This document shows, piece after piece, positions 9,060-61,179 of a DNA stretch of 64,000 bases. The DNA is taken from contig NC_133620.1 of the NCBI RefSeq assembly GCF_048593235.1, forward strand, positions 291,849,765-291,913,764, given 5' to 3'. The stretch comes from Sminthopsis crassicaudata (lineage: Eukaryota). The position numbers and the translations under genes were made by a program. Each line of letters begins with the position of its first letter. Within the stretch, counting starts at the first letter, position 1. Below the pieces are notes generated by a model that worked only from the letters and a program-made list of their open reading frames with translations, was not told the origin of the DNA and searched no databases.

Positions 9060-11072
<2,013 letters not shown>

Positions 11073-14289: not shown

Positions 14290-14671
14290 AGCTGTGGCGC
14301 AGGCGCACACAAGGCCGGTAAACCCAATCGGTGGGGTAGATCCTCAATCATGTACGCAGGCGCAGTGTGGTTTGCGCAAGCGCAGTAAGGTCCCCTGGGA
14401 GGCGGCGACGGTGGCTCCTCTGGGTGCTCGGCTTTCTCCCACCTAGGCCGGGCCCTGATTCGTTTCCTCTTAGGGACTCCCCGATACCCGGGGCCGCCCC
14501 TTCCCTCTTCGTACCCAACAGAAGGAAATCTTAGGAACCGAGGGAACCGGAAGTGCCGTCTCGCGATCCCCCAGTTTCTATCGGGGAATAGGAAGTGTTC
14601 GTAGGCGGAAGCTTGGGGGCAGGACCGGAAGTGGCGTTGCCTCCGGGAGGCCGGGGGCGGAGCCACGGGGC

Positions 14672-18300: not shown

Positions 18301-21300
18301 GTTGTAGAATGGATTCTTTTTCAGGTATGGATTGAATTATCCGGCCTCTGAAGTTCCTTCCAACTACAGATTCTGTGAGAATGCAGAGGCCTGGTTTGAG
18401 TAGGATTATGGAGCTAATGTCTTCACTCATGTTTTGACCTATTCTCTTTGCTTTTTTATTTCCAGAGTGAGCCTCGTGTTCGTTTGGTTATGGCCCAGCA
18501 TATGCTGAGAGATATACAGGCTGTGTTATCCCGCTTGGAGGTATATGGGGAAAGGCTGACACAGATTTATTCTTGTGCAACTCCTCCTCAGGATTTGACC
18601 ATCTTAAGTTTCTTTGTCTCCGTCTTGTTTTACTTTGGTTTTCTCCTTTCTTGTGAGGGTTGGGGTGGGAAGACAGGGATTTGGAGACACTGTCTTGTTC
18701 ATATTCTACCTGGTTCAGAATTCACATTCTACCTGAGTCCAGAAAGCAATTTCCTAGCTCCTTTCACACAAAAAACCTTTACTGTTTGTAAAACCTTTTC
18801 CTTTCCAAGTAGAAAAATGTTTCACATTCTTTATTAAGGTCCCTCATTTCAATCCTTTAAACAGTACTTACTGAAAGATTTTTTTATTCGGTCTCATTTT
18901 AGTTGTTCCTATGACAGCAACAGTCAGTTAATTATCTTGTTCTCTGTTCTCATTGGAGTTGGGAAATAGTTTTCTTCTTCCTTCCTTCCAGCTGCTGATA
19001 TGTTCGGAGAACTTAAATATTGAATTCCAGTCTTTAGTATTTTAACTTGTATAACTTATTTTGACTCAATCTTGCCTCAGTAATCTTCTTCAATTTTAGG
19101 GCCGAGCCAATGGAGGGCAGCATCAGCAGCAACACCCACCACCACCACCTGTTTCAGAGTCATCATCCTTAAATTCAGAGGCTCCTGAACCATCAGAGGG
19201 TGAACCTCCTTTACGAGAGCCCATGGAAGCAGGAGACCCGGAGGAAAGCACCCAGCCCCGGAGCCCTGAGTCCTCTCCTCCTGGTCCAGCTCCAGCTCCC
19301 GCTCCCAAGTGAGTGATTTTGAATGGCAGGGGAAGTATAGTTAGAGGATAGGAGGGAGGTGAGTTTTGAAAGCAAGGTATTGTTGGGGAGGGGAGATTGG
19401 CTAGGGACTGGACTTTGCCTATTGAATAAAGGAAGTAGATGAAGATTCTGTTTGTGTAGGGTAAGTAAATAAAGAGATGTGTAGGTATAAACCTAAAAAG
19501 TAAGATTATGATAAGCTTAGTGAAAGTGCTGGTTTCTTGGGATAGGAGAATTCTGAAGTTACTTTATTCTCATAAATTCTAATTTCCCCCCAGTTTTTGG
19601 CTAGGAAGTAAACTTATATTTCTGGTTCTTCTAATAGAAAAACTAAGGAGCAATAACATGCTCCAGGGTTTAGGAATGGGTAAGTGAGAGAAAGAGCATT
19701 CACAGCGGGGCTTAGGAAACCTGTAAAAACCTTAATGAATGCCCTGCTATCATTTCTCATAGCCATCCATCCCCTTTGGAGTATGTTGAAGTGCTTCAGG
19801 AGCTACAACGAGTAGAGGGCCGACTCCAGCCCTTTCTACAGCGTTACCATGAAATCCTGGGATCTGCTGCCACCACAGATTATAATAATAATGTGAGTTA
19901 GTTTTTTTTTTTTTTTTAAATGTCCCTTTCATATTGTTTGGTTTAAAGGCAGAACTGATATTGAAATTTACCAGCCCACCCAAGATGGCCATCATATTGT
20001 CCATATAAATTTTTTCCTTCATTCCCCCATGGTCACACATATCTTTTCTATATGACTTTAAAATAAGCCTGATAATCATTCTTAGCATATGTGCAGTACT
20101 TGGAACATTATTTTCCTGCTTTTTTCTTCATCCTTGTTTTTTTTTTTTTTTTTTAAACTCAGTAGCTGATACAGATATGCTTTACTTTAAGCAAAATTAC
20201 AGGAAATTTGAATATGAGAACATGGATTTGAAAAATAATTTACTGGCCAATGATTTCAAAAGAAATCACAAATACTCCTTCCAATATCTAGCTTCAATTT
20301 AACTAATTAAATTTTCAGAAATTTAGTTTATATATAATTGTGTTTGATTTTTTTTAATAAACCTCTAAATACATTTTCGCTTTTCCCCTTCCTCTTATAT
20401 GGAATTCATCTTTTAACTCTTTATTAGAAATTAAATATCAATGCTAAGAACCATATTTGCTTATTAGCTGGCTACATTTTAATTAATTTCAATATTTAGT
20501 ATAACATTTTTTCAGTGTTTTCCTTGAAATCACCATTAGGATTCTTAAGTTTTCTCATTCTTAAGACACTTTTGTAAATATGATCGTAATCAGTTCATAT
20601 TCCATTTTTCTGGTTTTTTTTTTTTTTTTTTTAATAATGTAATATGGGGCAGCTAAGTGGCACAGTGGATAGAGCACCAGCCTTGACTTCAGGAGGACCT
20701 GAGTTCAAATGTGGTCTCAGACACTTAACACTTCCTAGCTGTGTGACCCTGGGCAAGTCACTTAACCCCAGCCTCAGAAAAAGAAATAATGTAATATGAT
20801 AATATTAACTAAATAATGCAAAAAAGTTTACATTATTTTCTAAAGATTTTTCTAAACTTCTTTGTATTTAATATTTATTGTAATTGTTCTATAATATTAA
20901 TATTTAATTGTTCCCCTATTATAAGATTTTTAGGTCACCTCAGTGTTTACCATTTATTTATATATAATGCTGCTATGAAAATCTATAAATAGACAACTTA
21001 AAAAAAAGAAGAATGTCTTGACATGTTTCTAGCAATGCAATTATAGGGCCAAATGGTATGATTAGCTCTTCTCTACAGAAAATATCATTTCAAGGAGATG
21101 TGTGATAATCCCAATCTGTTCTCCCTTTAAATTTTCTTTTCTTTTCTCTCTTTTTCTGGTTCTGGGGGAATGGTTTTAGACTGAAGGACGTGAAGAAGAT
21201 CAGCGAGTGATCAATTTGGTTGGAGAGAGTTTACGACTGCTGGGTAACACCTTTGTGGCATTGTCTGATTTGCGCTGCAACTTGGCTTGTGCCCCTCCTA

Positions 21301-24300: not shown

Positions 24301-27300
24301 ATAATCCTGGTGTTTTGTGGGGATGGAGAGAATACAATAAATATTTGGAATTCTTAGCTTTAGGGCCTTAATAAAACCCACTCCACAGTTGGGTATTTAA
24401 CTTAATTTGATCCCTTCCTTTGTACCATTTGGTACAATCTCTTCAGTGTGTTGTATCATCTTCATCCCTCTCTAAGAGTGGGGTCACGATACATTATTTA
24501 GCTTGTTTATTATTTTTACTCCTTGGCACTGATTCCTTTGCTTTTTTACAGGCAACACAGACTGCTCCCCCCCCTCCTCCTCCCCCTCCCCCACCTCCTG
24601 CTCCAGAACAGGCACCTCCACCACCTGGGTCCCCTCCAGCAGGGCTGGGGGCACGTGGCCAAGGTGGGGTGGGACCTGAGAGCCTGCCTCCTGAGTTCTT
24701 CACCTCAGTGGTACAGGGTGTGCTGAGTTCCCTGCTAGGTTCTCTTGGAGCAAGGGCAGGTAGCAGTGAGAGCATTGCAGCCTTTATCCAGCGCCTTAGT
24801 GGCTCCAGCAACATTTTTGAACCTGGGGCAGATGGAGCCCTTGGTGAGTGGGGTGAGGGAGCAAGGGGAAACCTTTGGGGTGAAGAAAATTTTTTTTGAA
24901 GTTAAATGACTTGCCCAGGATCATACAGCTACGAAGTGTTATTAAGTGTCTGAGACCAGATTTGAACTCGGGTCTTACTGACTTCAGGACTGGTACTCTG
25001 TCCATTGCACCAACTAGTTGCCACAAGAAGAAATTTTAAGAATGGGATTGGATCTCCTTAATAGGGAGTTGAGTGTCATCTTCAGGGTGGAAGCCTTTGA
25101 TGGGAAGGGGTTACTTACTGGTCTGCCTCAGGCTAAGAAAGATGATTCCCAGAATGAGCCAAAGAACTAAGGAAGTGTGAAGGGGGTGGGTAAGGGGTTA
25201 AGAGATACTTGGGCTAGAAAGTCTGAATACGTAAAGTGTTCAAGCTGGTTCTTTTTCTAGGTTGATACAACTTTATTGCATATGATAACTTTCTTCAACT
25301 TCTCTCTTCTCTCTGTTTGCAGGGTTCTTTGGGGCATTGTTATCCCTCCTGTGCCAGAATTTCTCCATGGTAGACGTGGTAATGCTCCTTCATGGTCACT
25401 TCCAGCCACTTCAACGACTCCAGCCTCAGCTTCGGGGCTTCTTTCATCAGCACTACCTGGGAGGCCGTGAGCCTACACCCCACAATATCCGGGTGAGGGG
25501 AGCTTCTTTTTTCAAAACTCAGTTTTTAACTGCAGGAACCTATTGCAAATCATGTAACCTTTGTTCTTATTTGTAAGATGAGTGGGTTGAACTTGATGAA
25601 TTAATTCTAAGTCCCCTTTCAGCTTTAAATCTGATCAATTTGCTATAATGTCTACTAGCTGAGGCCTCTAGATTACTGACTGAGCATGCCAGGAAGGGGA
25701 GGATTCTCCAGAAGCTAGTTGCTGACCTTATCTTGGTCTCTCCCACAGATGGCAACCCATACACTGATCACAGGATTGGAAGAGTATGTTCGAGAGAGTT
25801 TTGTGAGTGGTGAAATATAGGAACTCCCACACCCAGCCACTACTTCTCTTTCTGGCTTTGGAGGAGGCAAACCTCACACACACACAAATTTTATCTTCCT
25901 TCACATTTCCAAAGTACAATCCCTTGGGAATCTTGTGTGGGGTGTATTCCCTTCTAGATCCAGAAATAGTTCATTCCACTGTAGTCACTGTTACCTTGTC
26001 TTAATTTTGTCTTTGTTTTTCAGGCCTCTGTGCAAGTACAACCAGGTGTGGACATCACCAGGACAAATCTAGAGTTTCTCCAGGAGCAATTCAATGGCAT
26101 TGCTTCCCATGTCCTGCACTGCACAGGTTAGGGCTAGGAATTTGTGGAAGTCAGGGATTTGGGATTAAGTGTTACGAGAGAACAACTCCTCTCCTTTCCT
26201 TTACAGATGGTGGCTTTGGGGCCCGATTGCTGGAATTGTGTAACCAGGGACTGTTTGAGTGTCTGGCTCTGAACCTACATTGTCTGGGGGGACAGCAGAG
26301 TGCACTCACTGATGTCATCAATGGCAGAATTGTAAGACATGATGACTTATTTGGTCTATTTTTCTCTAGGACTCCCATTATATATACATGGAAGTCCACC
26401 TTCCTCTTCTGTTATTAAAGAGAGAAACAATTTTCATTTATTTTTACCAGCGCCGGATGTCTGGAGGAGTAAACCCATCCTTAGTAAGCTGGCTGACAAC
26501 CATGATGGGACTTAGGCTTCAAGTTGTGCTGGAGCACATGCCTGTAGGGCCTGATGCTATCCTGAGATATGTTCGAAGAACTGGTGATCCCTCCCAGGTG
26601 AGGATGGTGGGATCTTATGCTTGTGTCCCTATGTACTGTGGTGGCATAAAGTGGGAGAATGGTAATAGGCTTAGTTATATTGGGGGATGGGAACCTATAA
26701 AGAGAGCCTATAAAGAGACCTTTCTCTATCCTTCTACTAAATTTCACAGCCAGGTCTTGAGGAACCAATGGAATTCCAAGTTGCTGAAAGAACTCCTGAG
26801 CCCCAGGTATTGGGGAAGAGTTCTCTTGGAAACTGGGTACCTACCTGGGGATAGGAAGTTGGAGAGGGGTTATATGATATCCTCTCTTCTTTTCTTTTAT
26901 CTCTCAGCGAGAGAATGCCTCCCCAGCCCCTGGCACCACTGCAGAGGAGGCCATGTCCCGGGGACCACCTCCTGCTCCTGAGGGTACCTCTCAGGAGGAA
27001 CAAGATGGAGCTACTGCTGAGACAGAGCCCTGGGCTGCTGCTGTTCCTCCAGTAAGTTGTGTGGCTTTGGAGGATGTGGGGGTGCTAAATGTTGTGAAGA
27101 GCTAATTTCCTCACTCTTCCCCAGGAATGGGTTCCAATTATCCAGCAGGATATCCAGAGCCAGAGAAAGGTGAAACCACAGCCTCCCCTGAGTGATGCCT
27201 ACCTCAGCGGCATGCCTGCAAAGAGACGCAAGGTTTGGCTCCTTTCCTGTTGGGGAGATGCCCTCTTAGTCCTGTGGGGTGAAGCAGCCAATTCTTCTGC

Positions 27301-28759: not shown

Positions 28760-41099
<12,340 letters not shown>

Positions 41100-41205
41100 T
41101 CAATGCCAGATACCCACAATTTACATCATTCTTTGATCAAGGGCCCAATCTGATCATTAAACCCTCACTTTGGGATTAGGGCTGAGACTCCATCTCCCTA
41201 AAAAT

Positions 41206-41340
41206 TAATGTAGGACAGAAAGTCCTGGGCTAGCGAGGGTAGGGCAAGCTAGTCCTGAACTTTTCCTAGCCCCTCATTTCTTTGCCTCCGGTTCTTACGT
41301 ATCTATGGATGGGAGGCCACAGACACGCCTTTGTGGGAGG
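41206..41340 (-). ncRNA. SNORA38: H/ACA snoRNA SNORA38 (ACA38) in PRRC2A intron 2
   Basis: Minus strand CCTCCCACAAAGGCGTGTCT...GTAAGAACCGGAGGCAAAGAAATG...CCTACATTA. First hairpin is closed by CCTCC/GGAGG, followed by an H box (AAAGAA) and ACA three nt from the end. Resembles recalled human SNORA38 and sits in the same host intron. Confidence 0.88.
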
Positions 41341-41518
41341 TAAAATAACTCCTATCCAGAATCAGGTCTCTAATCCACTCCCCTCTTTATCCCAGGTGTA
41401 TACCTACTAAGCCCTCTGTGTTCCTTTGGCCTCCCATGTCTCTATGTTTGGATTCCCCAAAGGACCTTGATCACTCCCATCATTTCTGCCCCATCCCCCC
41501 CTACATGGAAACGTTCCC

Positions 41519-41706
41519 NNNNNNNNNNNNNNNNNNNNNNNNNNNNNNNNNNNNNNNNNNNNNNNNNNNNNNNNNNNNNNNNNNNNNNNNNNNNNNNNNN
41601 NNNNNNNNNNNNNNNNNNNNNNNNNNNNNNNNNNNNNNNNNNNNNNNNNNNNNNNNNNNNNNNNNNNNNNNNNNNNNNNNNNNNNNNNNNNNNNNNNNNN
41701 NNNNNN
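41519..41706. other. Assembly gap containing PRRC2A exon 2 (start codon)
   Basis: Minus-strand acceptor CCTGCAG|G abuts the gap. The N-terminal MSDRSG... segment is absent from the called sequence. Confidence 0.85.
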
Positions 41707-43299
41707 CCTGCAGGTAGGGTTCCAGTACCTCACTCCCTGTTCTTTCTTGCCCAACAAAGTGAAAGATATCTTGGATCCCTGGCTCATTCTTTTGCTGAAA
41801 GCCTCAGCCTTCTAACATCCTCAGAAACCCAAACAGCCAAGTTTCTTATACCTTTCAAACTCAGGCAGGGAGATCTGAATTTCAAATCCTGTTGCCTTTC
41901 AACAATTGATCTTTCTACCTGGCTTCACCCTCTGATACCACAATGAAAAGTCCCAAATAATTGGGGGGGGGGGAAGAGAAAGGGGAGTTAGAGGAGGAGA
42001 GAATAATAGCAACTTAATGAATTCATTTTAGGGATCTATGGAACATCAGGTCTCTGATTCTTTATTCCTTGGCTCTTTCCATCTCCCAGCAAATAAACAA
42101 AAACTAAAAATCCGTATTCCAGAGAAAACCAGTAAGATCACAGCTCACAAAAACAGAAATCTCAATCCAATAACTTTTCAAACTTGAACTCTCCACTTAG
42201 TTTTAAAATTCCCCAATCCTGTTTCAGGGCCTAGGACCTTAAGGCTCTATTCCCAGCATGCCTGAGGAAAGAGGGATGCTGGGAGCTTGATGATTTTATG
42301 AGTTCGCCCAGTCAGAGAAATGCTGAGGGGAACAATGTGTTCACCCACACTCTGGGGCTAAAGCATCCGTAAACTACCTACAAAACAGCCCAGGACACTG
42401 CAGACGCAGTAAGGCGTCAGCCAACTTTTGTTTTCCCAAATCCAGATGGTGATGAAACAAAGTAAGTGGCCCAGGCTGGCCCTACCACCAACCCCACAAC
42501 TTTCTCTTTTACCAAACCCCCAAATCCAGGTGGCTTGCCTATCTCCTAATCCCACTTCCCCAGATGCACCGGGACTGCCATGTGTGGAGAAAGGCAGCAA
42601 ACCTTACTTTTTGGGCCCAAGGATGGGAAGCACACTTTCTTTTTGTTAAGCTGGAGAAGGGGGAGGGAGGGGAACACTTCTCTGAGGAGAAGAATACGGA
42701 AGGTAAAATAGGATTTAAACACCCAGCACGTCTCAGGAACTTATTCCCAAAGGGGAAGGCCTGGCTTATCTCCAGAAAGGGGGGAAAGGAATGGGGGCCC
42801 ACTAACGGTGGCGACCAGCGGTGAAGGACCGAGAGGGAAAGGGAGGGGGTCTGGTTTTGTCAGAAGTAGCAAAAACGTGAGAAGGGGCAAGTAAAATGTC
42901 CCCGGGGGAGGGAAAAGTGGCTGATTAAGGCCAGGGTAGAAGAAAACACAACGTGAAAGGTTACGTTAGAGATGATGTGAGGAAAAAAGGGTGGAATGGG
43001 GGCACATGTGAAGGGGAGAGAGGCCGGAAAAGGGGCATTGTGAGGAGAAAGGCAGGGATGAGGGGCAGGGGACAGATCAATATTACCCAGGGGACCGAGC
43101 TGAGCGACTCAAAGGGGGAGAAGCAACCCGGAAGGAGGAGAAATGAAGTGACGCGGGAGGGGAGAAGCCCCAGCACGCAGGGTGAGGGCTGAGACCCAGC
43201 AAGTCAGGCGAGAAGAGTGCGAGGGGCCGGTGTACAATATGGAGGAAGGGGGTAGAGAAGGGTGATTTTGCGGAGAAAGCCATTACCTCTAGTTAAGGG

Positions 43300-44720
43300 A
43301 GATAGGGGTGCCCCAGAAGAGGGAGCGAGGGTCGCCCCGCTAGAAGCTGGGGGAGGCAAGTTATCATCCCCCAGGGAGGGGGGGAGGGGAGCAAGAAAGA
43401 GGTGGGGGAGTCCCGGGGGGAGGGGCGGCCGGACCCCAGCAGCTAAAAGAGGACAAAATGGCGGCGGCGGCTGATGGCTGCTGCTGCTTCTCTACCTCTT
43501 CCCTCCGCCGCTACCGCCGCCTCTAACCCCACTCTTTCCGTCGCAGTTGCCGGCTGCCACCCGCGCCGGGAATGAGGTGGCCGCCCCGCTGCGCGTCCCC
43601 CAGACTCACCTGGCCGGGTGTGCGGAGGTCCGGGGCCGGGGTCTAGGGCTCCCCGGGGCGGGATGGCGGCGGGGCGGGGGCGGATGGCGGCGGATGGCGC
43701 CGGCTTCGGCTCCTCCCGTCTCCCTCGCTCGCTCGGCGGCTCGGCTCCGACTAACGGCCCATCCGGGCAACCGCCACCCCCGGGAGCGCCCCCCCCAACC
43801 TCCCGCCTCCCTCCGCGCCGGGACACGCCCCCTTCATTTGCATAAAGGGTGGAGTTCCCGCCACCCGACCCCACTCTTTAATCACTGTACTGTTCGTTTA
43901 AAAAAAAAAAGGAGGAAAAAGAAAAGGCCTGGAAGAAAAAAAAAAAGGGGGGGGGGAAGCAAAAAAACTGGGACAAGCGAGAGGGAGGATGAGGAGATTA
44001 TTTGCATAAAGAGGTAGGATAAGCCGTAGCTGGGACTGTGGTTGGCTAGGGAGGCAGGCCCATCCCCAGTCGGCCGTTATGGTATGAGACGTGAGGCATG
44101 AGGCGTAAGGCGTACGGGAGAGGCGGGGCTTCGGCGCTGGTCTGCTCGCCTGTTGGTAGATGTCAAGCGTAAGCTACGGAAGAGGCAAAGGGGCGGAACG
44201 TGCGTCTTTGCGTACGCGACGGGAAGAGGCAGGATAGACGTAAGCAGCATAGCTGGAAATAGAGGCGGGACGCGTGGAACTAGTAGAGCGGTAAAGGGGT
44301 GGCAAGGAATAGTCTAATTATTAGTGTACCACCTACGTAGAATGAGATTTGTGCGGGCCTCACGATAATCTCGCGAGAGCGATGCAGACCGTGATGGGGT
44401 AGGGTTTTTAACAGGATTTTGAGAATAAAATATGCTTCGGGGATATTTACTTTTAGATTTAATGTGAAAAAATTGTTAGGAGTCAAATCCGAAGGACGAT
44501 AGGCCAACTTTCTGTGGTATTAGCATGATTCATTCTAAGCCCTGCTGCACGTAAAGATACATGCTAGAGACAATCTGTGACCCGCGCGGGTCCTCTGTCT
44601 TGTGTGTCTGAGAATGGCCTGGAATTCCGTGAGGGTCAGTGACGAGCTCGGTATTCCTGGCCTCTGGGACAGCTTTCCAGCCGCTATTTCCTGCCGCCTC
44701 TATGCCGTGTAATCAGCGGT
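43300..44720. promoter_or_regulatory. PRRC2A CpG island and promoter
   Basis: High CpG density, YY1 motif AAAATGGCGGC (43455-43465), two octamers ATTTGCAT (43836, 44000), and a perfect TCTCGCGAGA (44369-44378). Confidence 0.8.
43610..43800 (-). other. PRRC2A: PRRC2A non-coding exon 1 (5' boundary approximate)
   Basis: Consensus donor CAG|GTGAGT at 43610/43609 inside a strong CpG island. Confidence 0.75.
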
Positions 44721-46409
44721 TCTCAGCCTTTCTGGTCTCCTTTGTAGTCTTCATTATCCAGGGCAACCCTTCCGCCCCGCAGTATTTGTCTGTGTAGATT
44801 ATAGCTGGCAAGTAGTTACCCCATTGAGAGCAAGGGTCTCAAAATTGGGAAAACCATTGTTTACTTTGAATACTGCCTGAGAGTCACTGCCGTTATATAC
44901 AAGTACCTCACATAAGTGAGCTGTTTTCCCAGTGTTTGTTCAACGTACTATGTGCAGTCAGGGATGGAATGCAATATCATCTGTATGACATTATTGTTTT
45001 TGTTATTTATTTTTTTAAAAATTGAATTCCAAGTTCTCTCCCTCCAGTACCTCACTTATGTAAGGCAATGATACTCATTGTATATGTGATGTCAGGGAAA
45101 ACACATGAATCATATTTTCACATGAATCATATTACAAAAATTATAAAAAAAAACAAGAAAAATAAAGTGAAATAAATATGCTTCAATCTACGCTCCGTTC
45201 GTTGGTTCCCTCTCTGAGGGTGGATAGCATTTTTCTTTATGAGTCCTTTGAAATGATATGGTGCAGGGACAGTTAGATAGAACACCAGCCCTGAAGTAAG
45301 GAGGACCCTCATTCAAATCTTCCTCAGACATTTAATATTTACGGGCTGTGTGACCCGGGGCAAGTCATTGCCTCAGCAAAAAAAAAAAAAAAAAAAAGAA
45401 AGAAAAAAATATATATACGCCACATAATGAGAAGTAACTTCCTAGTGTGCTTAATATATTATAACAGATTTTCAAAAGATGGTCTGCAGTACTCCCTCAA
45501 CCTTATTTCATAGCTTCTCCTTTAATGCTGTGCTCCAAGCAGATAAGAGGAGTGAGTGGCCCACTCACTGTCACCGAACATTTTCTGTGATCCCACCATA
45601 GCCTGCCTGTAGAGAGTGCTGTACTTGGATGGAGAGAGGAAGAAATCTGCCAAGATGTGTAAGCATGGGCAAGTCACTCCATCTCACCAAACCTCAGGAA
45701 ACCTTTACGTTCAGTAGACTTAGTGCTCAAGAATGTTCTTACATACATTAAAGGGTACTGTAGAGGATACAAAAATAGACATGATCCAGTTCTTGCCTTA
45801 AGGGAGATATCTTCAGAATATACTTCCAGTTTTAATACAAAAAAAGTTCTCTCAATGACATCTGTACCTACCTAATCTTTGAGGTCCATCTCTACTTGTA
45901 TTACCTGCTCTGTGAAATGATCCCTGAAGTCCCTCTTCAATCCAGAGTAACCTCTACCTGCTCTGAACTCCCCAGAGCATTAATTAGCATATGAGAAGGG
46001 TCTTGTGTTATTATTACTTTAAATATATGTTAGTATCTTTTCTCATCAATCTATCAAATCAGTAAGATATAAGAAAAGGTTATTAAATGTGAAGTCAGAA
46101 GACTTCATTTGGTTCAAATGGATGAGGGCCAGTTAATACTTTCATTTTCTACCCGATCAGGTATACTTCAGAATACTTAATAAATTCCATAAGCTGAGTA
46201 GACATTCACAATATATTTTTTATCAATTGATTACCTAAGTAAAAGGGCTCTTTTACCCTATTCTAATTCTTTCCCCCATCCCAGATAAAGCAAATATTCT
46301 TAATTTTGAGGGGGATAGTATGTATTTGATTCATAGTTTGCTTTCCAGTTTCAGTGCCCAATTTTGGGGTGGAGGAAGTGAACCCCCTGAATAACCCCCC
46401 CCCATTCTC

Positions 46410-47185
46410 TCAAGTCAATTCAGAGATTGCTTTCTTGGCTGTGGGGGAGTGTGTGCGTTGGTTTCTCTTGTACTCTGTTTTTCTCCTCATACATCAGGAT
46501 CCTAAATTGGAGAATTGGAAAGATAGAAGGGTGGGAATAGGCAAGAATCTGCTTGACAAAGGAGTAAAGGGGGTCAGAAGCCAAGTGAATTAAAAAGACA
46601 CAGGTTGGGGTTTGAAAGCAACAAAGGATTTCAGAAACATGAGAGGAAATAGAATTAGTGGAAGAGAAAAGAACCCTATCTTTGTTGGGGAGAATGGACC
46701 AGAATGGGGAAGTTGTCATTGGAAGGTCTGGGGAATGGATAGAAGTAGAACTCAGAAGGTGATTCAGATGAAGAATATGGAGGATCCAGGATAGTTTATG
46801 GGAGTATGACACCTACATTTTAAGAATGGCTGATCTCTTGCCTAACATCATCCTGAGGAAATCCAGATAACAAATGGTCTCCCCGGGGCCATGTGCCACC
46901 TCTCTAATTAATTTCTTCAGTTCTAGGTAGGTCTTAGAGACTCCTAGTTTCCCCAGCATACTCTTCAGAAAAATTATATTTTCAGAGTGATTGGAAAGGC
47001 TCATACAACTTCATTTTTTTACATTTCCATGAAGTAGATTCTACTCTCCCCAGTGAATAGGGTAGAAACCCCATTCTTAGATATGTTTTTAGAAGAATAT
47101 CACTTCCTTCCACCGCTGGGAAGGGGTTGGATGGGGGTATTTACCCCAGGGTCACTGATATTCAAATCAAACTCCCTATATTTCT
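46410..47185 (-). pseudogene. AIF1: Allograft inflammatory factor 1 (Iba1) remnant: three 3' exons, disrupted
   Basis: 47185-47145 EKYREFDLNISDPG (41 nt); 46979-46817 [54 protein letters not shown] (163 nt, acceptor AA); 46501 onward ILMYEEKNRVQEKPT, with the ancestral tail AKKAISEL* in a shifted frame. Syntenic position upstream of PRRC2A. Confidence 0.85.
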
Positions 47186-48789
47186 CTGAAGAGGTTAGGA
47201 AAAAAAAAAAGAGTAGGGAGGATGAGAAGATTGCATTTATAATGGAGGACAGTAGAGACAGGAGAGACAGATTATGGCTAGAGAGTGATTGAGAGGGGTA
47301 GGGTTGGAGAAATGGGATGGGAGGTAGGAACCATTGGGAGGGGTGGGAAGGAGGGAAACAAATAGTTGTTATTGGAAATTAGGTTTGAGTGCAAAGATCA
47401 TGTAAAACAAATGCTCATATTAGCCGTGTTTTTAAAAATAGTAAATAGTAAGAAAAATAAAGTGAGAAAATTATACCTCAATTTGCATTCATCAGAGTTC
47501 ATCAGTTCTCTTTTTTGGAGAGGGATGACTTTTTTTCATGAGTCCTTTGTAATTGTCTTGGATCATTATATGATTAGAGTAACCAAGTCTTTCACAGTTG
47601 ATTGTTATTATAACATTGCTGTTATTGTGCACAATGATCTCCTGGTTCTTTTCATTTCACTTTGTATCAGATTATATAGTTCTTGCCATGTTTTTTTTCC
47701 TTGACGTCTGAGCTGCTTTTTCTATTGGGGGCTTCTTTTTACTTACATGTCACAAATGAAAGTTGGTCCTTCTGTACGGTATTACTCCCTAAGATCTAGC
47801 CCAGTTAATGAAATTTTTTAAGCAGGTAAAATAGCAAACCATTACAATTATGTTGGTTCCATTCCCAACTTCCTGCAGTAATTTATTAGTTAGGTAAATA
47901 TATAGATCCACCTCATATGTAGATTATTGTAGTTTTAATAATTATGAAATCGAAGGATGTAAATCAGAAAAGTTTCTTATATGCAAAGAAATAGGCTTCT
48001 TTTCCCTTTTCCCTTTAGCCTCCTTGAAGGAGAGCAAAGATCACACACATTTCTGAAGTTCATAGACAATAGGACAGGGGAAGAGGTTGTATATCATTCT
48101 TCAGAAAGAAAGGAATATAGAGAGATCAGAGACTTTCCAGACCCCAAGTCTGATTGCTAAACAGGATTCATAGCAGTTTATAATGTTAGTAAGAATGCTC
48201 AACTTGGAATCAGGAGGACCTGAGTTCAAATTCCTTTTCAAATACTATTTGTCAAGTAACCTCTGTGTGCCTTGGTTTCCTTACATGTAAAATAGAAAGA
48301 ATAATATCTATCTCTTATTGCTGTTTGTGAGGATGAAATGAAATATTTGTAAAAGTACTTTGCAAACTTTAATAAAGCATTATATAAATGTTAGTAATTA
48401 TAATTATTTTCATCATCATCAGTATTGTTATTTTTAGTAGTATGGTCTTTAGCAGACTTTAGGTGGCAGACTGTTATGTGGCAAATTCTCCTCATGTGAT
48501 CTGGATTAATACTAGTAATCTAGCAGGCACCCCTTTGGTCATACTTGTAGTCTTTCAAGTGTCATAAATTGACAAAAAGAGAGAATGGTCATAAACTGTA
48601 GCCAAGATCCCTTTTATAATGTTCCCTGTCATAATATTCTCTGTTACAGAGAATCTATGTGATCAAAGGACAGTGTGATTAGAACGATTTCAGAATATGT
48701 TCTTACCCTAGCCTCACTAAAATTGTTTTGGTCTTATGGAAAAACTCTTTTTAAAAATTTAATTATTAAAAATATAAATTTAATTTGCA

Positions 48790-49390
48790 GTAGCCCTTTT
48801 TGAAATGCCAAGGAACTGGAAACTGAGTGGATGCCCCTCAGTTGTTATATGAATAATACGAAATATTACTGTTCTATAAGAAATACACAGCAGGATGATT
48901 TCAGAAAGACCTGGAGAGACTTACATGAACTTATGCTAAGAGAGGTGAGTAGAACCAAGAGAACATTGTACACAGCAACAACAATATTATGCAATGATCA
49001 GTTCTGAGGGAAGTGACTATTTTCAACAGTGAGACAATTCAGGCCAGTTCTAATGGACTTATGATGGAGAGAGCCATCTGCATACAGAAAAAGGACTGTG
49101 GGAACTGAGTGTNNNNNNNNNNNNNNNNNNNNNNNNNNNNNNNNNNNNNNNNNNNNNNNNNNNNNNNNNNNNNNNNNNNNNNNNNNNNNNNNNNNNNNNN
49201 NNNNNNNNNNNNNNNNNNNNNNNNNNNNNNNNNNNNNNNNNAAATGTGTATAGAATAATAGCACATAAGGGGAAAGGAAGGAGAAAAAAATTTGGAACAT
49301 AAGGTTTGGCAAGGGTGAATGCTGAAAACTATGCATATGTTTTGAAAATAAAAAGCTAAAAAAAATAAAATATTTATTTTTGCATGCATC
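48790..49390 (+). mobile_element. Marsupial L1 3' end (gapped)
   Basis: GGAACTGGAAACTGAGTGGATGCCC...GACTGTGGGAACTGAGTGT...GAAAATAAAAGCT, the same 3'UTR motifs as the L1 at 59.2-60.0 kb. Confidence 0.75.
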
Positions 49391-51999
49391 CATAATCTGG
49401 CACTTCNNNNNNNNNNNNNNNNNNNNNNNNNNNNNNNNNNNNNNNNNNNNNNNNNNNNNNNNNNNNNNNNNNNNNNNNNNNNNNNNNNNNNNNNNNNNNN
49501 NNNNNNNNNNNNNNNNNNNNNNNNNNNNNNNNNNNNNNNNNNNNNNNNNNNNNNNNNNNNNNNNNNNNNNNNTTTCATCATAGTACAACAATAACAAAAA
49601 GTCCACATGGATAGTCCAACAACAACAAAAAATTTCTACGTTTATGTATCTGAAAATTTTTCTACATTTTAATTTCATCTATGTGATAGGAGGTGAGTGG
49701 CATGTTTCATCTTCAGTCCTCTGGAATTGTGGTTTATCTTTGCATTGATTCCAAAGTTTTCAAAGTTGTTTTCTTCTACAATTTTGTTGTCATTGTATAA
49801 ACTGTTTTTCTAGATCTGTTCACTTTGATTTGCATTAGTTCATTGAGGTCTTCCCAGATTTCTCTAAAACGGTTTTATTATTTTTTATATCACTAATATT
49901 CCATTATGTTCTCATACCATAATTTACTTAGCCATTCCCCAATAAGATATTCCTTCATTTTCTAATTTTTGGCTACTATGAAAAGAACTTTTATACACAT
50001 TTCTTTTTACATATAGATTTTTTTCCCCTGTATTACTTCAATTTCTAAAGAGTATATGCCTATTTTTGTTTTCTTTTTCAGTTTTTTCCTTTTTGATCTG
50101 ATTTTCCTTGTGTAACATGATAATTGTATAAATATTTTTAATAACTAAATTTTTTACAAGAGTCTTTCCATAAGACCAAAATAATTTTAGTGAGGCTAGG
50201 GTAGAACATATTCTGAAATCGTTCTAATCACACTGCCCTTTGATCATATAGATTCTCTGTAACAGAGAATATTATGACAGGGAACATTATAAAAGGGATC
50301 TTGGCTACAGTTTATGACCATTCTCTCTTTTTGTATAAATATTGTACATATAGTTATATATACGTGTGTATGTATATATTTATTTACAACCATATATATG
50401 TATGTTTGTATATTATACATGTATATATGTATATAAGTGAACTTATCTATAGTAGTCAAAATTTTTTCATTTGCTGTAACTGATGAATGGTTTATTGCTG
50501 GTTGGTGAAGAACCTGTGTTTTCTTGGTGTTAATTGTTAGGCCAAAATTTGTACAAGCAACACAGAATCAATCCCACTTTGTTACATTTTAGTTTCAGAA
50601 GCTGAAATGAGTCAACAATCATGTGAACAAAAAAATCAAATACCAACTCTCTCTGTACTTTAATCTTTGCCTGTAGTCTTTTCAAGTTAAATAATTTAAA
50701 TTAACATATTTTTAAAAACATGTTTGACATATATTGGATTACTTGCCATCTTGGGGAAGGAGTGAGGGGAAAAGAGGGAAAAATTTGCAACACAATGTTT
50801 TGCAAGGGTCAATATTGAAAAAATATCCATGTTTTGAAAATAAAAAGCTGCAATAAAAATAAAAATTTTTGAAAAGAGTATATGCTAATAATGACATCAT
50901 TATGTCAAAAAACTTGCACAACTTTCATGGGCATAGTTTGAAATGACTTTCTAGAATGGCTACATCATTTCAGAATTCCACCAGTACAATACAGCAATGT
51001 ACATGTTTTCCTACAGTCCCTTCGACATTTATCATTGCCTTCTATCATCTTTGCAGTGTGTATGAGTGACTGTGGCTTAATTTGCATTTTTATTAATGAT
51101 TTTTGATACTTTGGGTTTCATCTTTCATCCTGTTCGTATATTTTGACCATTTATCAAATGAGGAATGAGTCTTAGTTTCATAAAATTTTATCAATTCCCT
51201 TAGTATTCTATCTAGGAGACCTCAATTAAAGAAACTTGTTGCATAGATTTTTCCCTCCATATATCTGTTTCTTTTCTAATTTTAACTACTACATTAAATT
51301 TGTTTGGATAAAAACTTTAAAATTTTATGTAATCAAATTTGACAATTTAATCTTGTGTGATCTTTTTTTTTTTTTTTTTTTTACTTATTAGTCACAAACT
51401 CTTCTATCCATAAAGTCTGAAAGGTAATTTCTAACTTGCTCCTTTAATTAATTTATGTTACCTAAATCTATTTGGAGCTTCTCTTGGTAAATGATATGAG
51501 GCCTGATGTAAACCCAATTTCTTTCAAAGTGCTGTCCAGTTTTCCCTGCAATTTTTTAACTAAAGAGACCTTGATAGTGGAAAGATTTAGAGGCAATCAA
51601 GACAAGGCAAAATTCCTCTAGATTATAAAAGCAAAACTATTGGTGAAGAAAAGTAGGGAATAGGGACATGACAGCCTGATCTTATGTAGTCAGTGAGATA
51701 TTTGTGTTCTTAGCACAATGCCTGCCCTATAGTAGATACTATATAAATATTTATTTCCTTCCCACTCTCTGCCTCCTCCTCAATATCCAGTGGTAAGAAT
51801 TTGATTGGAGTAACTCTTACACTGAGGGTCTTTGGGAGAATTGTATTCCTAACCAATCCAGGACCATAAAGGTTCAGAAGGTCAGATGAATTTTTGGCTA
51901 CTGAGATAACTTAATTAGTTGATTAGGAGATCAACCATTTAATTAGATGGGTAGAAAGATGGTGACATATTTGTTCATTTCAAACTGAAGAAGGAACCA

Positions 52000-54130: not shown

Positions 54131-55182
54131 CTTTCAAAAAGGTTATAACTCTACCACTCATTCTTTCTTCCCTCATCCTCCAGATGGCATCATGTAAACC
54201 TGTATTTGGAGTCCTGACATTGCCTATATAATCTTGGTCAAGTCACTTAACCTTTCTGAGCCTGTTTCTTCAACTGTAAAATGAGGGTATTTCATTTCAT
54301 CACTCTAAGAATCCCTTCTACTTATAAAATGATGATCTTGTGATTCTACTCATCAAATGATAATTTCATTTTAGGATAACTATTTGTTAGGATTTTTTCC
54401 TTACAAAGACTTACATTTCCCCCCTGTGTAATTGCCACTCTTTACTTCTAGTTCCAACTTCTGGTACTAACTGTCCTCCCTCTTTCATGTAACAGCCATT
54501 TTGACTATCAATCGATAGTCTTGGTCATTCTCTAGTTTATCAGTATATCCACATTTCCATAGATTTTGTGGTCTCATCAATTGGATACCTTGTTCAAGGA
54601 TTCATACTGTAATTTATTTATTCCCCTTTGTGATGTTTGTCCATATCTTCCATTAAATCCTTACAGAGGAGCCCACCTGTCCTACAGGTTTTCCTCTAGG
54701 TCTCTAGATATTGCTTAGATATTATTGAACTATGTGGGCTGTTCATCAGATCTTCTTCACTCCTTTTTTGTTGTTGTTGTTGTTTAGAGGCAACTAGAGC
54801 TCCTTCATTCTTGATCCATGACTATCACACTTTTTCTGGTCTTTTTTGGTCTGGTCCACACCTTTCACAATTTTCAGTTTGTAATGGGTTGCTATCTTAC
54901 TTATATCTGTGATATCTTACTTATATCTGTGATCTCATTGCCATTTGGATTTTGCTTACCTTTAGAGCCTTAGGATCTATGGTATTTAGGGACTGAAGCC
55001 ATGTGGCCATTATTGTTAAAAAGATGGGCCTTTATTTTAGGAAGAAGTTTGGTGATATTAAAAACACTATGAAATTTTCCAAAGGTAATCTGGTTTATCC
55101 ATGTTCTTTTTTAGATATAGAAGTAAATATGTTATATACATGGTATGATTATGACAGAATTCATGGAGATTTTCAGTTTTCT

Positions 55183-55336
55183 TTTTCTTTTTTTTTTTTT
55201 TTTCTGAGGCTGGGGTTAAATGACTTGCTCAGGGTCACACAGCTAGGAAGTGTTAAGTATCTGAGATCAAATTTGAATTCAGGTCCTCCTGAATTCAGGG
55301 CTGGTGCTCTATCCACTGCACCACCTAGCTGCCCCC
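55183..55336 (-). mobile_element. Young marsupial SINE with 15-bp TSD
   Basis: GATTTTCAGTTTTCT at 55168-55182 and 55337-55351. Confidence 0.9.
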
Positions 55337-57436
55337 GATTTTCAGTTTTCTAATCTAAGAGTTCATTTTTTTTTAACCTTCATATCATAGTGTTGACTTA
55401 TATTGAGCTTACAATTCATGAAAATCCTCATATCTTTTTCAAATGATTTGCTTCTAACAACTTGTACTATTGAAGTTGACTTCATAAAAATATGTGTAAA
55501 ACTTTTCATTTATACCCATAAAATTTTATTTTATTACATTTGACTCAGTGTTCTAGACAGAGACAGAAACTTCCCCTAGCTCTTGCTCAGGTCTTTACAG
55601 TTGCTATCTCTTCATGGTTGGAAAATTCTGTGTTTATGTCTTTCTGTGAATAAATGAAAACAGGGTCTATGAACCAATTTCCTCTTCAACAATTCTCTCC
55701 TCTGCCCTCCCATATGATCTGATATACAATTTTGGCCACCAGGTCAGCCTCTGAATGAATACCACTTAGATGAGCCCCTCAAAGAAATCAGACAATAGGT
55801 TTCTATGCAGGGGTTTTGCTTTCTGTAATACTGGTATTATAGACTGATTATATAATACATAAACATAAAACACTTTCCTCTTTTGAAAGTAATAACTCTG
55901 AGCTGTATTGGGAGAGTAGGAAATCCAGTATAGTCTTGGTGAAAAAGAAGAATTACAGCTGAAAGGGACTTTTCAGATTATCTAGTCGAGTCCCTTTATT
56001 TGATAGATGAAAACATTAAGCCTAGAAAGACTAAATAGTTGTCCAAGATCACACAAGTAGTAAGTAGAAAAATCAGGATTTAAATCCAGATTCTCTGATC
56101 CCAAATTCAGTACTTGCATCATGCTGCCAGAAACTAAAAGTTTCAGGAACCTGGTGACTTGCAGGTGAAGGTAATGCTGTCAGAATAGATGGAATGAAGT
56201 ATTTAAAGGCTATCATGAAATAAGGCAATTGTGAGTGGTCTGGCTGGTACTCAGAAACTTTCTTCATTAAATGTTTTCTTTACCATAGGGACCTGATTCT
56301 AAAAGGGTACAGATTCAGTTATCTAGAAATACATAGAAATAGAGATAGACTTAAATAGAAAGTGAGAATCAGAGACATGAACACAGAGGAGTAGAAACCA
56401 AAAAAAACAGATATAAACCCAGAAACATATCCAGGTAGAGATGGATAGAAACACAGAAATGTTTAAAAAATAAAAAAAAAAAACCCACAGAAATAGAAAA
56501 AGAGATTAAAAACAGTTACACAGACGTAACATGTGACCTGATGTATAATTCTGGCTACCAGGTCAAGTCTTACCTGAGTTTTGGTAGGTACTAAATTTTT
56601 GTAGCTTTCAGTGACATGTTGTTGGGCCATTACCAGTTGTCTTGACTTCTATCTTGCCATTGGACTCTGATAACTGTGAAGGAAAGAAAGAGGCAGATGA
56701 TTTTGTGCAGCTCTTCCTCATGTAAACTCAATTCTCCTAAGTCAAGACATCACTCCTGTGATGTCATTGATCCTTTTCAAGAACAAAGAATGAACAACAG
56801 CAATGATGACATTTACTGTTCAGTTTCCACTCTTTTCTTATATAATTTACATTAAGCGCTAAGTCTGGACTCCTTTGAGCTAACCCTACTGAACTTCTAA
56901 ATCTCTATACACTCAAAGAAACTTTAGAAAGAGGAAAGGGACTTACTTATGTGTGCAAAAATATTTATAAAAGTTCTTTTTATAGTGACAAAGAGCTAAA
57001 AATTAAGCAGCGCCTGTTAGTTGGAGACTGGTGAATATAATGGAATATTATTATACCATAAGAAATGATAAAAGGAACAATTTTAGGCATAGCCAGGAAA
57101 TTTTGTATGAATTGATAAGTAATGAAATAAACAGAATCGTTATATAGTAATAACAGCATTAAAAAAAAACTAAGAAAAATTTCATAACTGATCAATTCTG
57201 ATCAATTAATTATCTAATAAGAATTCCATTGAATCTTTGATGAAGTATGCAAGGATGCAACCACGAATTTAAGGTGCAGAATGACATATTTTCAGACATG
57301 GCCATTGTGGGGATTTGTTTTGCTTTACTATGAATATTTTATATAAGTACTTAGTTTTTCTGTCTTTCAATTTTGGAGGAAAGTAGAGAGTAGTTAATAA
57401 ATTTTTTTTTAATTCCTACTAAATTTTTTTTTTTTT

Positions 57437-60010
57437 AATTCCTACTAAAATCACTTGAGAGTATAGGAATAAATGGACTATTCCTTAAAATAATCAGGAG
57501 CATATATTTAAAACCATCAGTAAATATCATATGTAATGGCAATAAACTGGAACCTTTTCCAGTAAGATCAGGAGTGAAACAAGGTTGTCCACTATCACCA
57601 TTACTATTCAATATTGTATTAGAAACGCTAGCCTGGCCAATAAGAGTTGAGAAAGAGATTAAAGGAATTAGAGTAGGTAATGAGGAAACCAAACTATCAC
57701 TCTTTGCAGATGATATGATGGTATACTTAGAGCACCCCAAAGATTCTGCTAAAAAGCTATTAGAAATAATTCATAACTTTAGCAAAGTTACAGGATACAA
57801 AATAAATCTACATAAGTCCTCAGCATCTTTATACATTACCAACAAAATCCAACAGCAAGAGATACAAAGAGAAATTCCATTCAAAATAACTATTGATAGT
57901 ATAAAATATCTGGGAATCTATCCACTAAAGGAAAGTCAGGAATTATATGAGCAAAATTACAAAACACTTGCCACAAAAATAAAGTCAGATTTAAATAATT
58001 GGAAAAATATTAAGTGCTCTTGGATAGGACGAGTGAATATAAAAAATATGACAGTACTCCCAAAACTAATCTATTTATTTAGTGCTATACCAATCAGACT
58101 CCCAAGAAACTATTTTAATGACCTAGAAAAAATAACAACTAAATTCATATGGAAGAACAAAAGGTCAAGAATTTCAAGGGAATTAATGAAAAAAAAATCA
58201 AATGAAAGTGGCCTAGCTGTACCTGATCTAAAACTATATTATAAAGCAGTAGTCATAAAACCATTTGGTATTGGCTAACAAATAGACTAATTGATCAGTG
58301 GAATAGGTTAGGGTTCACAGGACAAAATAGCGAATAACTATGGCAATCTAGTGTTTGACAAACCCAAAGATCCCAACTTTTGGGATAAAAATTCATTATT
58401 TGACAGAAACTGCTGGGAAAACTGGAAATTAGTATGGCAGAAATTAGGTATGGACCCATACTTAACACCACATACTAAGATAAGATCAAAATGAGTTCAT
58501 GATTTGGGCATAAAGAATGAGATTATAAATAAATTAGAGGAACATAGGATAGTTTACCTCTCAGACTTGTGGAGGAGGAAGGAATTTGTGATCAAAGGAG
58601 AACTAGAGATCATTATTGATCACAAAATAGGAAATTTTGATTACATAAAATTAAAAAGCGTTTGTACAAACAAAACTAATGTAAACAAGATTAGAAGGGA
58701 AGTAACAAACTGGGAAAACATTTTTACAGTTAAAGGTTCTGATAAAGACCTCATTTCCAAAATATATAGAGAACTGACTCTAATTTATAAGAAATCAAAC
58801 CATTTTCCAATTGATAAATGGTCAAAGGATATGAACAGACAATTCTCAGAGGATGAAATTGAACTATTTCTACTCATATGAAAGAGTGTTCCAAATCACT
58901 ATTGATCAGAGAAATGCAAATTAAGACAACTCTGAGATACCACTACACATCTGTCAGATTGGCTAAGATGACAGGAAAAAATAATGATGAATGTTGGAGG
59001 GGATGTGGGAAAACTGGGATATTGATGCATTGTTGGTGGAGTTGTGAAAGAATCCAGCCATTCTGGAGAGCAGTCTGAAATTATGTTCAAAAAGTTATCA
59101 AACTGTGCATACCCTTTGATCCAGCAGTGCTACTACTGGGATTATATCCCAAAGAAGGGAAAGGGACCTGCCAAAATGTTTGTGGCAGCCCTTTTTGTAG
59201 TGGCTGGAAACTGGAAAATGAATGGATGCCCATCAATTGGAGAATGATTGGGTAAACTGTGGTATATGAATGTTTTGGTTTTTTTGTTTTTTTTTTTGTT
59301 TTTTTTCTTCTGAGGCTGGGGTTAAGTGACATGCCCAGGGTCACACAGCTAGGAAGTGTTAAGTGTCTGAGATCATATTTAAACTCAGGTCCTCCTGGAT
59401 TCAGGGGTGGTGCTCTATCCACAGCGCCACCTACCTGCCCCTAGTTTATGAATGTTAAGGAATATTATTGTTCTGTAAGAAATGACCAGCAGGATGAATA
59501 CAGAGAGACTTGGAGAGACCTATATGAACTAAAATGCTGAGTGAAATGAGCAGAACCAGGAGATCATTATACACTTCAACAACAATACTATAAGAGATGT
59601 ATTCTGATGGAAGTGGATATCTTCAACAAAGAGAAGATCTAATTCAGATTCAATTGATCAATGATGGACAGAATCAGCTACACCCAAAGAAGGAACACTG
59701 GGAAATGAGTGTAAACTGTTTGCATTTTTGTTTTTGTTCCCAGATTATTTTTACCTTCTGAATCCAATTCTTCCTGTGCAAAAAAAAAAAAAAAAATTGG
59801 TTCTGCACACATATGTTGTATTTAGGATATACTATAACATATTTAACATGTATGAGAATGCCTGTCATCTAGGGGAGGGGGTGGAAGGAAGGAGGGGAAA
59901 ATTCAGCACAGAAGGGAGTGCAAAGGATAATGTTGTAAAAAATTAACCATGCATATGTACTGTCAAAAAAAATGTTAATAAATAAATAAAATAAATTTTA
60001 AAAAAGAAGA
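57437..60010 (+). mobile_element. 5'-truncated, inactive marsupial L1 (ORF2 RT and C-terminal region plus 3'UTR)
   Basis: KQGCPLSPLLFNIVLE, LSLFADDM, YLGI, WIGRVNI, LPKLIYLFSAIPI and C-terminal CWRGCGKTG..HCWW. Split across frames by stops and frameshifts. A-rich tail ~59975-60010. Confidence 0.95.
59276..59441 (-). mobile_element. SINE nested inside the L1
   Basis: SINE body with poly-T tail, flanked by TATGAATGTT on both sides (59266-59275, 59447-59456). Confidence 0.85.
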
Positions 60011-60923
60011 AGAAAAGTAAGAAAGGAGAATCATTGAAATGAATTTTTAATGCATAGAGAAGAAAATAAGGAAAGTCAATACAACACAAACACACAGGAC
60101 AACTTTGAAAATAACATATTGAATTTGGAGGAAGAAGTAAACAATACAGAATAAAGTTTTGCAGTTGAATTTGCCATCTTTTTCTATTATGCTTTGTATG
60201 TGGAAATCTCATCTTATCTAGTGCTAATAAGTTCAGAACTTTTGAATTATATTAAATTCTTAAAAATAACCCTATTATTGATGTCCTGAAATGCCATCCA
60301 TCATACACTCCTCCATGTCCATAAATAAATCCATACAACTTGGTAATTTGATTTTTTTTTTCAATATAGTATTGACTAAGTTCCTATGGATGTGATATAC
60401 ACAGGGCCTTTTGATTCCAATCCCATATATTAGAGACTTCACAGCCTTCATTAGGCAGTAGATGACATTTAGTAACATTTGATAAATTTAATGATGTATT
60501 TCTTATAAACTCAGTGGCATGATATCTGCTTATTCTAAAAGTATCCCTATAGATTTTTGATTTGTATACTATATGCTCTAAGAATATCTGTCAATCTTCT
60601 TCCTTTTAGATAAGGAAATGTTCATTTTCCTACAGCTACTTTAGGGCAATTGTTCCTATGTATTTTTGTCAGTATACTTTTCAAATTTGGAATAATTCCA
60701 TTTCTCAGTTCCAAAATCATATATTAAGACTGTCATTGACTATATGGACATGTATACATATATTGTATTTAACATATACTTTAGCATGTTTAACATGTAT
60801 TGGTCAACTTGCCATCTTGGGGAGGGGGTGGAGGGAAGGAGGGAGAAAATTGGAACAAAAGGTTTTGCAATTGTCAATGCTGAAAAATTACCCATGCATA
60901 TATCTTACAAATAAAAAGCTATA

Positions 60924-61076
60924 GGGGCAGTTAGGTGGTGCAGTAGATAGAGCACTAGCCTTGAATTTAGGAGGACCTGAGTTCAAATTTGGTCTCAGAC
61001 ACTTAACACTTCCTAGCTGTGTGACCCTGGGCAAGTCACTTAACCCCAGCCTCAGGAAAAAAAAATATAAAAAAAA
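60924..61076 (+). mobile_element. SINE inserted in the A-tail of an L1 3' fragment (60700-60923)
   Basis: AATAAAAAGCTATA is duplicated on both sides. Confidence 0.85.
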
Positions 61077-61179
61077 ATAAAAAGCTATATAAAAAAAAAG
61101 ACTGGCATTGTATATTGTTAATTGTTTTAAACATATTCCTCCTACTCAGCTATGACTTTAGGATATTATATAATAGGTA

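Follow-up and report, generated by a model that had tools for sequence, protein, structure and literature searches.

The gene for allograft inflammatory factor 1 (AIF1, also known as Iba1) has very probably been reduced to a unitary pseudogene in Sminthopsis crassicaudata, known as the fat-tailed dunnart, at a probably single-copy locus orthologous to that of other marsupials. AIF1 is an actin-bundling factor and the default marker of microglia and macrophages. We analyzed a window of 64,000 nucleotides from the dunnart genome (contig NC_133620.1, positions 291,849,765 to 291,913,764), in which the minus strand from 47185 to 46410, part of the major histocompatibility complex class III region, carries three pieces of AIF1. 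As read from the assembled DNA, no full-length 147-residue Iba1 is encodable at this locus, and dasyurids probably cannot make normal Iba1. A unitary pseudogene had been proposed in a preliminary description of the window. That reading is supported by an intact AIF1 in nine other marsupials, and it is strengthened by the fact that three of the lesions are common to the dunnart and the Tasmanian devil, Sarcophilus harrisii. The literature on Iba1/AIF1 in dasyurids and marsupials yielded no published report of the loss of AIF1 in dasyurids; the case is new, of a familiar type of event, the lineage-specific unitary pseudogene.

Identity of the locus and state of its exons

The best database matches of the relic were all AIF1. 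A 55-codon exon piece at 46980-46816 on the minus strand matched the structures of human and mouse AIF1 (PDB chains) with E values of 7.6e-19 to 8.7e-18, and its match to the paralogue AIF1L was weaker (E 5.5e-15, against 7.6e-19 for AIF1). Exon 5 was also matched by the Pfam family PF21008 (AIF-1; E 1.8e-21); these similarities are far beyond chance. In a word search, the 63-residue open reading frame around exon 5 was 100% identical to the S. crassicaudata protein XP_074120827.1 (92 residues) and 80% identical to the devil protein XP_003775360.4 (95 residues), both of which are labeled “LOW QUALITY PROTEIN: allograft inflammatory factor 1” by NCBI. In devil, bilby, and opossum, AIF1 and PRRC2A (PF07001) share a strand, with PRRC2A approximately 5 kb downstream. 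Local BLAST of window positions 36000-43600 showed collinearity between the dunnart and devil PRRC2A over the interval 43.6 to 37 kb. We considered a retrocopy and rejected this possibility because introns 3 to 5 align along with the exons, as expected of the orthologous locus.

The exon map was established by locating bilby and opossum AIF1 peptides, matched exactly, on their own loci, and the dunnart, devil, bilby, and opossum sequences were aligned (four-species alignment A1; the devil, bilby, and opossum loci are labeled L001, L002, and L003, respectively). This alignment across marsupials, which the preliminary description had called for, sorted the lesions into those shared by dasyurids and those confined to the dunnart. 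Intact AIF1 of bilby and opossum has six exons. With splice boundaries marked by a slash, exon 4 is 42 nt long and ends ...ATTG/GTGAGA, exon 5 is 163 nt long with the acceptor ...GGAAG/AT and the donor AT/GTAAGT, and exon 6 begins after ...TTCAG/G. The corresponding parts of the dunnart relic, with the basis of each assignment, are as follows.

47393..47399, minus strand: deletion junction; the upstream flank ends at 47399 and intron 3 resumes at 47393
47186..47392, minus strand: 3′ part of intron 3, which survives with its polypyrimidine tract and the exon-4 acceptor AG; alignable with intron 3 of bilby, opossum, and devil
47156..47185, minus strand: remnant of exon 4, 30 nt instead of 42 (alignment A1)
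46980..46981, minus strand: exon-5 acceptor, AG changed to AA, dead (alignment A1; exon phases from the intact relatives)
46817..46979, minus strand: exon 5, 163 nt, EF-hand 2, frame open (homology and alignment)
46502..46816, minus strand: intron 5, with intact donor GT at 46816-46815 and acceptor AG at 46503-46502 (sequence and alignment A1)
46410..46501, minus strand: last coding exon, with a 7-bp insertion at about 46454-46448 (alignment A1)

Exon 4 bears damage that is specific to the dunnart. An in-frame deletion of 12 bp between 47163 and 47162 removed four codons of the EF-hand-1 loop, which has its full length in the devil. The orthologous donor is the GT at 47155-47154, whose +5 position is altered (GTGAGA to GTGACC), and its use gives an exon of 30 nt. 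The preliminary description had read DLNISDPG in an exon of 41 nt at 47185-47145. The letters are there, but the length cannot be upheld: that reading ran past the donor to a later GT at 47144-47143, such that “ISDPG” is in part intron read-through. The same description had pointed out that the Met of the MEFDL sequence is replaced by AGG. The alignment confirmed this change (47177-47175) and assigned it to the dunnart alone, with ATG in devil and bilby. The opossum has CTG at this position, and by this comparison the exon-4 Met is not universally kept.

The lesions of the last two exons are common to the two dasyurids. Exon 5 has exactly 163 nt in the dunnart despite its dead acceptor, as had been reported, and the AA also occurs in the devil: both species read ...AAA/AT, where bilby and opossum have ...CTGGAAG/AT. 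The last exon was likewise correctly described as 7 nt too long, with AKKAISEL out of frame; the surplus was found relative to bilby and opossum, in dunnart and devil alike, and it shifts the frame. Thus, the in-frame reading of the last dunnart exon ends in ...THTLPHSQESNL at a TGA codon (46422-46420; ...SQESNL), and the ancestral AKKAISELT tail, with its stop codon at 46412-46410, is out of frame. The shifted tail reads ...EKPTHTLPHSQESNL followed by a stop in the dunnart and ...THPPPTSQESNL in the devil. The tail of the NCBI dunnart model, ...THTSPTAKKAISELT, disagrees with the genomic in-frame reading ...THTLPHSQESNL and its stop; this model and that of the devil both contain pipeline “corrections.” The features that characterize a functional AIF1, namely, six exons coding for approximately 147 residues, canonical splicing, a frame open to the AKKAISELP tail, and, in the dunnart, a full first EF-hand loop, are all missing from the relic.

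Loss of the 5′ exons and age of the shared lesions

Using the koala, opossum, and bilby AIF1 proteins as tblastn queries, we found nothing credible for residues 1 to 51 in the 64-kb window, nor at the devil locus including 10 kb of its upstream flank. Similarly, blastn with 10.7 kb of bilby and opossum sequence revealed no DNA-level match for bilby 9598-10520 or opossum 8967-10617. These searches agree with the earlier remark that exons 1 to 3 are missing, and the alignment of the flanks identified a deletion as the cause. Blocks of collinear sequence on the upstream side of the gene (bilby 4613-4966 with window 47979-47610, bilby 5382-5495 with window 47608-47492, and opossum 7202-7859 with window 48034-47404) are directly followed by intron 3 (bilby 10521-10730 with window 47393-47178). 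In the fine alignment, homology with the upstream flank, which reaches approximately position 7859 in opossum and 5554 in bilby, stops at 47399, and homology with intron 3, from bilby 10521 and approximately opossum 10555, resumes at 47393. The devil flanks meet at 9700/9706, and the junction sequence, ...TTTTACATGATCTTTGCACTCAAACC..., is identical to that of the dunnart.

Exons 1 to 3 are thus absent because they were removed by a deletion with its junction at 47399/47393, and not because repeats or runs of N conceal them. As reconstructed from these alignments, a single deletion took the promoter, approximately 2 kb of 5′ flank, exons 1 to 3, and the first 80 to 120 nt or so of intron 3. Its size is approximately 2.7 kb in opossum coordinates and approximately 5 kb in the repeat-enriched bilby locus. 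A highly conserved element has been described just upstream of the AIF1 5′ untranslated region (Deakin et al. 2006, PMC1654159); by its position, it would fall within the deleted segment.

The deletion junction, the AG-to-AA change of the exon-5 acceptor, and the 7-bp frameshift are common to dunnart and devil, nucleotide for nucleotide. An intact AIF1 of 147 residues is annotated in opossum, Gracilinanus, Dromiciops, koala, wombat, brushtail possum, sugar glider, tammar, and bilby, nine marsupials that span four orders other than that of the dasyurids. No intact dasyurid AIF1 was present among the matches listed (the best 120 of 692, annotated proteins only), where dasyurids were represented only by the two “LOW QUALITY” models, both truncated, and by an aberrant devil model from Ensembl. 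The dunnart (Sminthopsinae) and the devil (Dasyurinae) span crown Dasyuridae, and lesions that they have in common therefore predate the crown split. This split has been dated to 20.6 to 28.6 million years ago, and the separation from Peramelemorphia to approximately 48 to 64 million years ago (Kealy & Beck 2017). By this comparison, AIF1 broke before crown Dasyuridae, at a time when bandicoots and bilbies had already separated from the dasyurid lineage. The loss would then be that of the family Dasyuridae rather than of the dunnart alone.

The proposed course of events is as follows. In an ancestor of the living dasyurids, one deletion would have taken the promoter, the conserved 5′ element, exons 1 to 3 (residues 1 to 51), and the start of intron 3. 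The same ancestor would also have carried the AG-to-AA change at the exon-5 acceptor and the 7-bp insertion that shifts the C-terminal frame. The relic would have drifted afterwards in both lineages. In the dunnart lineage, 12 bp of the Ca-binding EF-hand-1 loop and the internal Met would then have disappeared, and the devil lineage would have acquired other replacements. We infer both that the deletion was the inactivating event and that a functional product is absent.

Gene models of the devil locus (positions 9992-10825) reflect the same lesions, which two annotation pipelines bridge in different ways. In the 95-residue NCBI model, the AA acceptor serves as a splice site and the frameshift is “corrected.” The 91-residue Ensembl/UniProt model (A0A7N4PSY9) relies on unusual splice sites and translates intron sequence.

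Constraint on the relic and rival explanations

Comparison of exons and introns points to relaxed constraint on the dasyurid gene. Dunnart and devil differ at 27 of 285 exonic positions (9.5%) and at 54 of 617 intronic positions (8.8%; Fisher p = 0.71), i.e., the exons diverge as fast as the introns. The bilby-opossum pair diverges by 10% in exons versus 23% in introns (p = 1e-6). Dunnart and devil differ at 8 of 69 residues, and opossum and koala, a far deeper pair, at 4. Nine of 55 positions that are invariant across the nine marsupials with an intact gene are changed in dasyurids. In the dunnart, the exon-5 replacements at invariant residues are P80S, H83Y, E75G, M68I, S69F, and R72S, the first two of which hit the GVPKTHLE motif common to AIF1 and even AIF1L.

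A number of observations weigh against a wholly inactive locus. The dN/dS ratio between dunnart and devil is 0.30 (Nei-Gojobori method on the joined codon blocks of exons 5 and 6; seven synonymous and eight nonsynonymous changes, 15 differences only), and most of the replacements fall within codons 1 to 9 of exon 5. The dasyurid stem carries nine synonymous and four nonsynonymous changes, which suggests that AIF1 was still constrained for much of that stem, and residual constraint may persist on the part that encodes EF-hand 2. More than 20 million years have passed, yet the frame through exons 5 and 6 is open in dunnart and devil alike, and both loci are still modeled as protein coding by NCBI. 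Finally, of the words sampled from 46350-47450, five small dunnart sequencing runs guessed to be RNA contain fractions of 0.61, 0.39, 0.31, 0.12, and 0.08.

In a neutral simulation that used the transition fraction of the introns, the probability of at least seven synonymous changes between dunnart and devil was 0.094, which is not significant. The open frame is weak evidence because approximately 41% of neutral simulations (28 mutations) gain no stop. As for the sequencing runs, DNA runs from two dunnart samples contain 0.87 to 1.00 of the sampled words, and runs of five other organisms contain approximately 0.07, as expected at a divergence of approximately 8%. The exon remnants make up an estimated one-third of the interval, such that a value of 0.61 would need intronic words too. 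The relic may thus be transcribed; provided that the run is RNA, the value would fit a transcript that is left unspliced or arises by read-through.

We therefore weighed two alternatives to a unitary pseudogene. A truncated yet functional gene, driven by an internal or new promoter, would code for approximately 75 to 95 residues comprising EF-hand 2, the C-terminal helix, and the new tail ...SQESNL. Besides the dN/dS ratio, the NCBI models, and the putative RNA runs, such a gene would account for a frame that continues from exon 5 into exon 6 in both species and for the shifted tail that ends alike in dunnart and devil. Substitutions from codon 10 of exon 5 onward, a split picked after seeing the data, amount to six synonymous versus two nonsynonymous ones, and AIF1 isoforms of 93 residues exist in rat and other mammals; the short product would loosely resemble these isoforms, which many eutherians have in their annotation. 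An ATG in frame also occurs early in exon 5 of each species, at codon 7 in the dunnart and codon 2 in the devil. However, the four-species alignment contains no start codon common to both: NCBI begins its dunnart model with an ATG in intron 4 (47004), and the reading from the equivalent devil position meets a stop, and the MEFDL Met of the devil is AGG in the dunnart. The exon-5 acceptor is AA in both species, and each of the nearby cryptic AGs, as read from the alignment by eye, shifts the frame or meets a stop. The pace at which the exons diverge, equal to that of the introns, and the nonsignificant dN/dS signal also argue against this alternative, as does the replacement of GVPKTHLE residues that are invariant in AIF1 and AIF1L. 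In addition, a lone EF-hand without its partner would be unlikely to fold like Iba1. In view of this evidence, we consider a truncated functional gene unlikely.

The other alternative is an artifact: a gap in the assembly or a wrongly assembled repeat would conceal exons 1 to 3, or an intact copy would exist elsewhere in the genome, and the small lesions would be sequencing errors. There is a precedent, as a gap at the same locus in an early opossum assembly hid most AIF1 exons (Deakin et al. 2006, PMC1654159), and the window contains runs of N at 49113-49241 and 49407-49572. The idea that these runs hide exons 1 to 3 was nevertheless rejected, because collinearity puts them at least 5 kb upstream of the expected place of bilby exon 1. 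The junction and the two small lesions are identical in the independent devil assembly, which has no N in 20.8 kb; the bilby and opossum loci are also devoid of N. Most sampled words of the relic interval are present in the DNA runs of both dunnart samples, and the matches listed include an intact AIF1 for nine other marsupials but none for a dasyurid. An artifact is thus largely refuted and appears extremely improbable, which leaves the unitary pseudogene as the reading that we favor.

Known systems, antibody staining, and neighboring sequences

The dunnart relic resembles AIF1 of other marsupials (opossum XP_056673869.1, bilby, koala XP_020829866.1, and tammar) by its slot upstream of PRRC2A on the same strand and by the base-by-base alignment of exons 4 to 6 and introns 3 to 5, with a mean column identity of 80% and an exon 5 of 163 nt. 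It differs from these six-exon, 147-residue genes, including that of the tammar (Deakin et al. 2006, PMC1654159), by the absence of the promoter and exons 1 to 3, by its AA acceptor and frameshift, and by the loss of four loop codons. The devil relic (XP_003775360.4; UniProt A0A7N4PSY9) has the same junction, AG-to-AA change, and 7-bp insertion, as well as the replacements P80S, H83Y, and E130V. In contrast to the dunnart relic, it retains a 42-nt exon 4 with its ATG and a full EF-hand-1 loop, and it has replacements of its own, M73I and S115L. The short AIF1 isoforms of 93 residues, such as rat “splice variant G1,” start at the exon-4 MEFDL Met and use the same exons as those that survive in the dunnart. 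However, they have canonical splice sites and keep the AKKAISELP tail, whereas Met, loop, acceptor, and tail are all damaged in the dunnart.

AIF1 was not found in chicken, frog, and zebrafish, and the human chromosome 9 paralogue AIF1L (C9orf58) may substitute for it (Deakin et al. 2006, PMC1654159). Those losses are similar to the present one in that AIF1 is dispensable in whole vertebrate lineages. They differ in having been inferred from early assemblies of nonmammals, whereas the dasyurid case concerns a mammal and preserves a relic, a breakpoint, and a dated window.

Common anti-Iba1 sera are raised against a C-terminal Iba1 peptide. The peptide in question (AKKAISEL) is not in frame in dasyurids. 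Microglia of the opossum, which has an intact AIF1, are labeled by an antibody against the C-terminal peptide of the human protein. In a control lymph node of the Julia Creek dunnart, Sminthopsis douglasi, Iba-1 labeling was described as “minimal,” with some clusters of reactive cells; this gives weak support, because CD68 and CD45 labeling also failed in the same tissue. It is plausible from the state of the gene that anti-Iba1 staining is absent in the dunnart or due to cross-reaction, as the preliminary description had anticipated. Should dasyurids be unable to make full-length Iba1, staining of their tissues with anti-Iba1 would fail or report something else, especially with antibodies to the C-terminal peptide. 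Single-cell marker lists based on AIF1 would likewise mislead in these animals, and other markers would be needed. The question has practical weight: the fat-tailed dunnart is an emerging laboratory marsupial, and devil immunology is intensively studied on account of transmissible facial tumors. For annotation, pipelines “repair” the AIF1 locus into a protein, and a pseudogene flag would be preferable.

A natural knockout of more than 20 million years would also be comparable with Aif1-null mice and would test whether AIF1L substitutes for AIF1. At its furthest, this reasoning would make all living dasyurids, devil and laboratory dunnart among them, natural knockouts of full-length AIF1 in which its absence measurably alters macrophage activation, graft or tumor rejection (a point that bears on the transmissible facial tumors of the devil), or microglial behavior, without full compensation by AIF1L; we regard this extension as a long shot.

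The surroundings of the relic are rich in repeats. A family resembling short interspersed nuclear elements (SINEs), of approximately 120 to 170 bp, is represented in the window by no fewer than nine copies.

11550-11718, 11936-12063, 12888-12985, 20630-20786, 24897-25037, 45266-45401, 55177-55373, 59281-59444, and 60920-61087, on both strands: SINE-like copies

The region upstream of AIF1 in bilby contains five copies, of which three fall within the part that dasyurids have lost. A 234-residue open reading frame at 57574-58275 (plus strand) matches reverse transcriptase (PF00078; E 2.3e-16) and represents a fragment of a long interspersed nuclear element; the DNA there, upstream of the AIF1 relic, is AT rich and full of repeats. 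At the opossum locus, a gene call of 157 residues between AIF1 and PRRC2A (14156-14629, minus strand), without a Pfam match, is probably spurious or repeat derived. On the PRRC2A side, two further runs of N in the window, 39723-39878 and 41519-41706, correspond by collinearity to devil positions 17930-18083 and 16086-16273, respectively. The latter interval holds the start of the devil PRRC2A gene call (16148), and both runs look like masked conserved exons rather than breaks of synteny.

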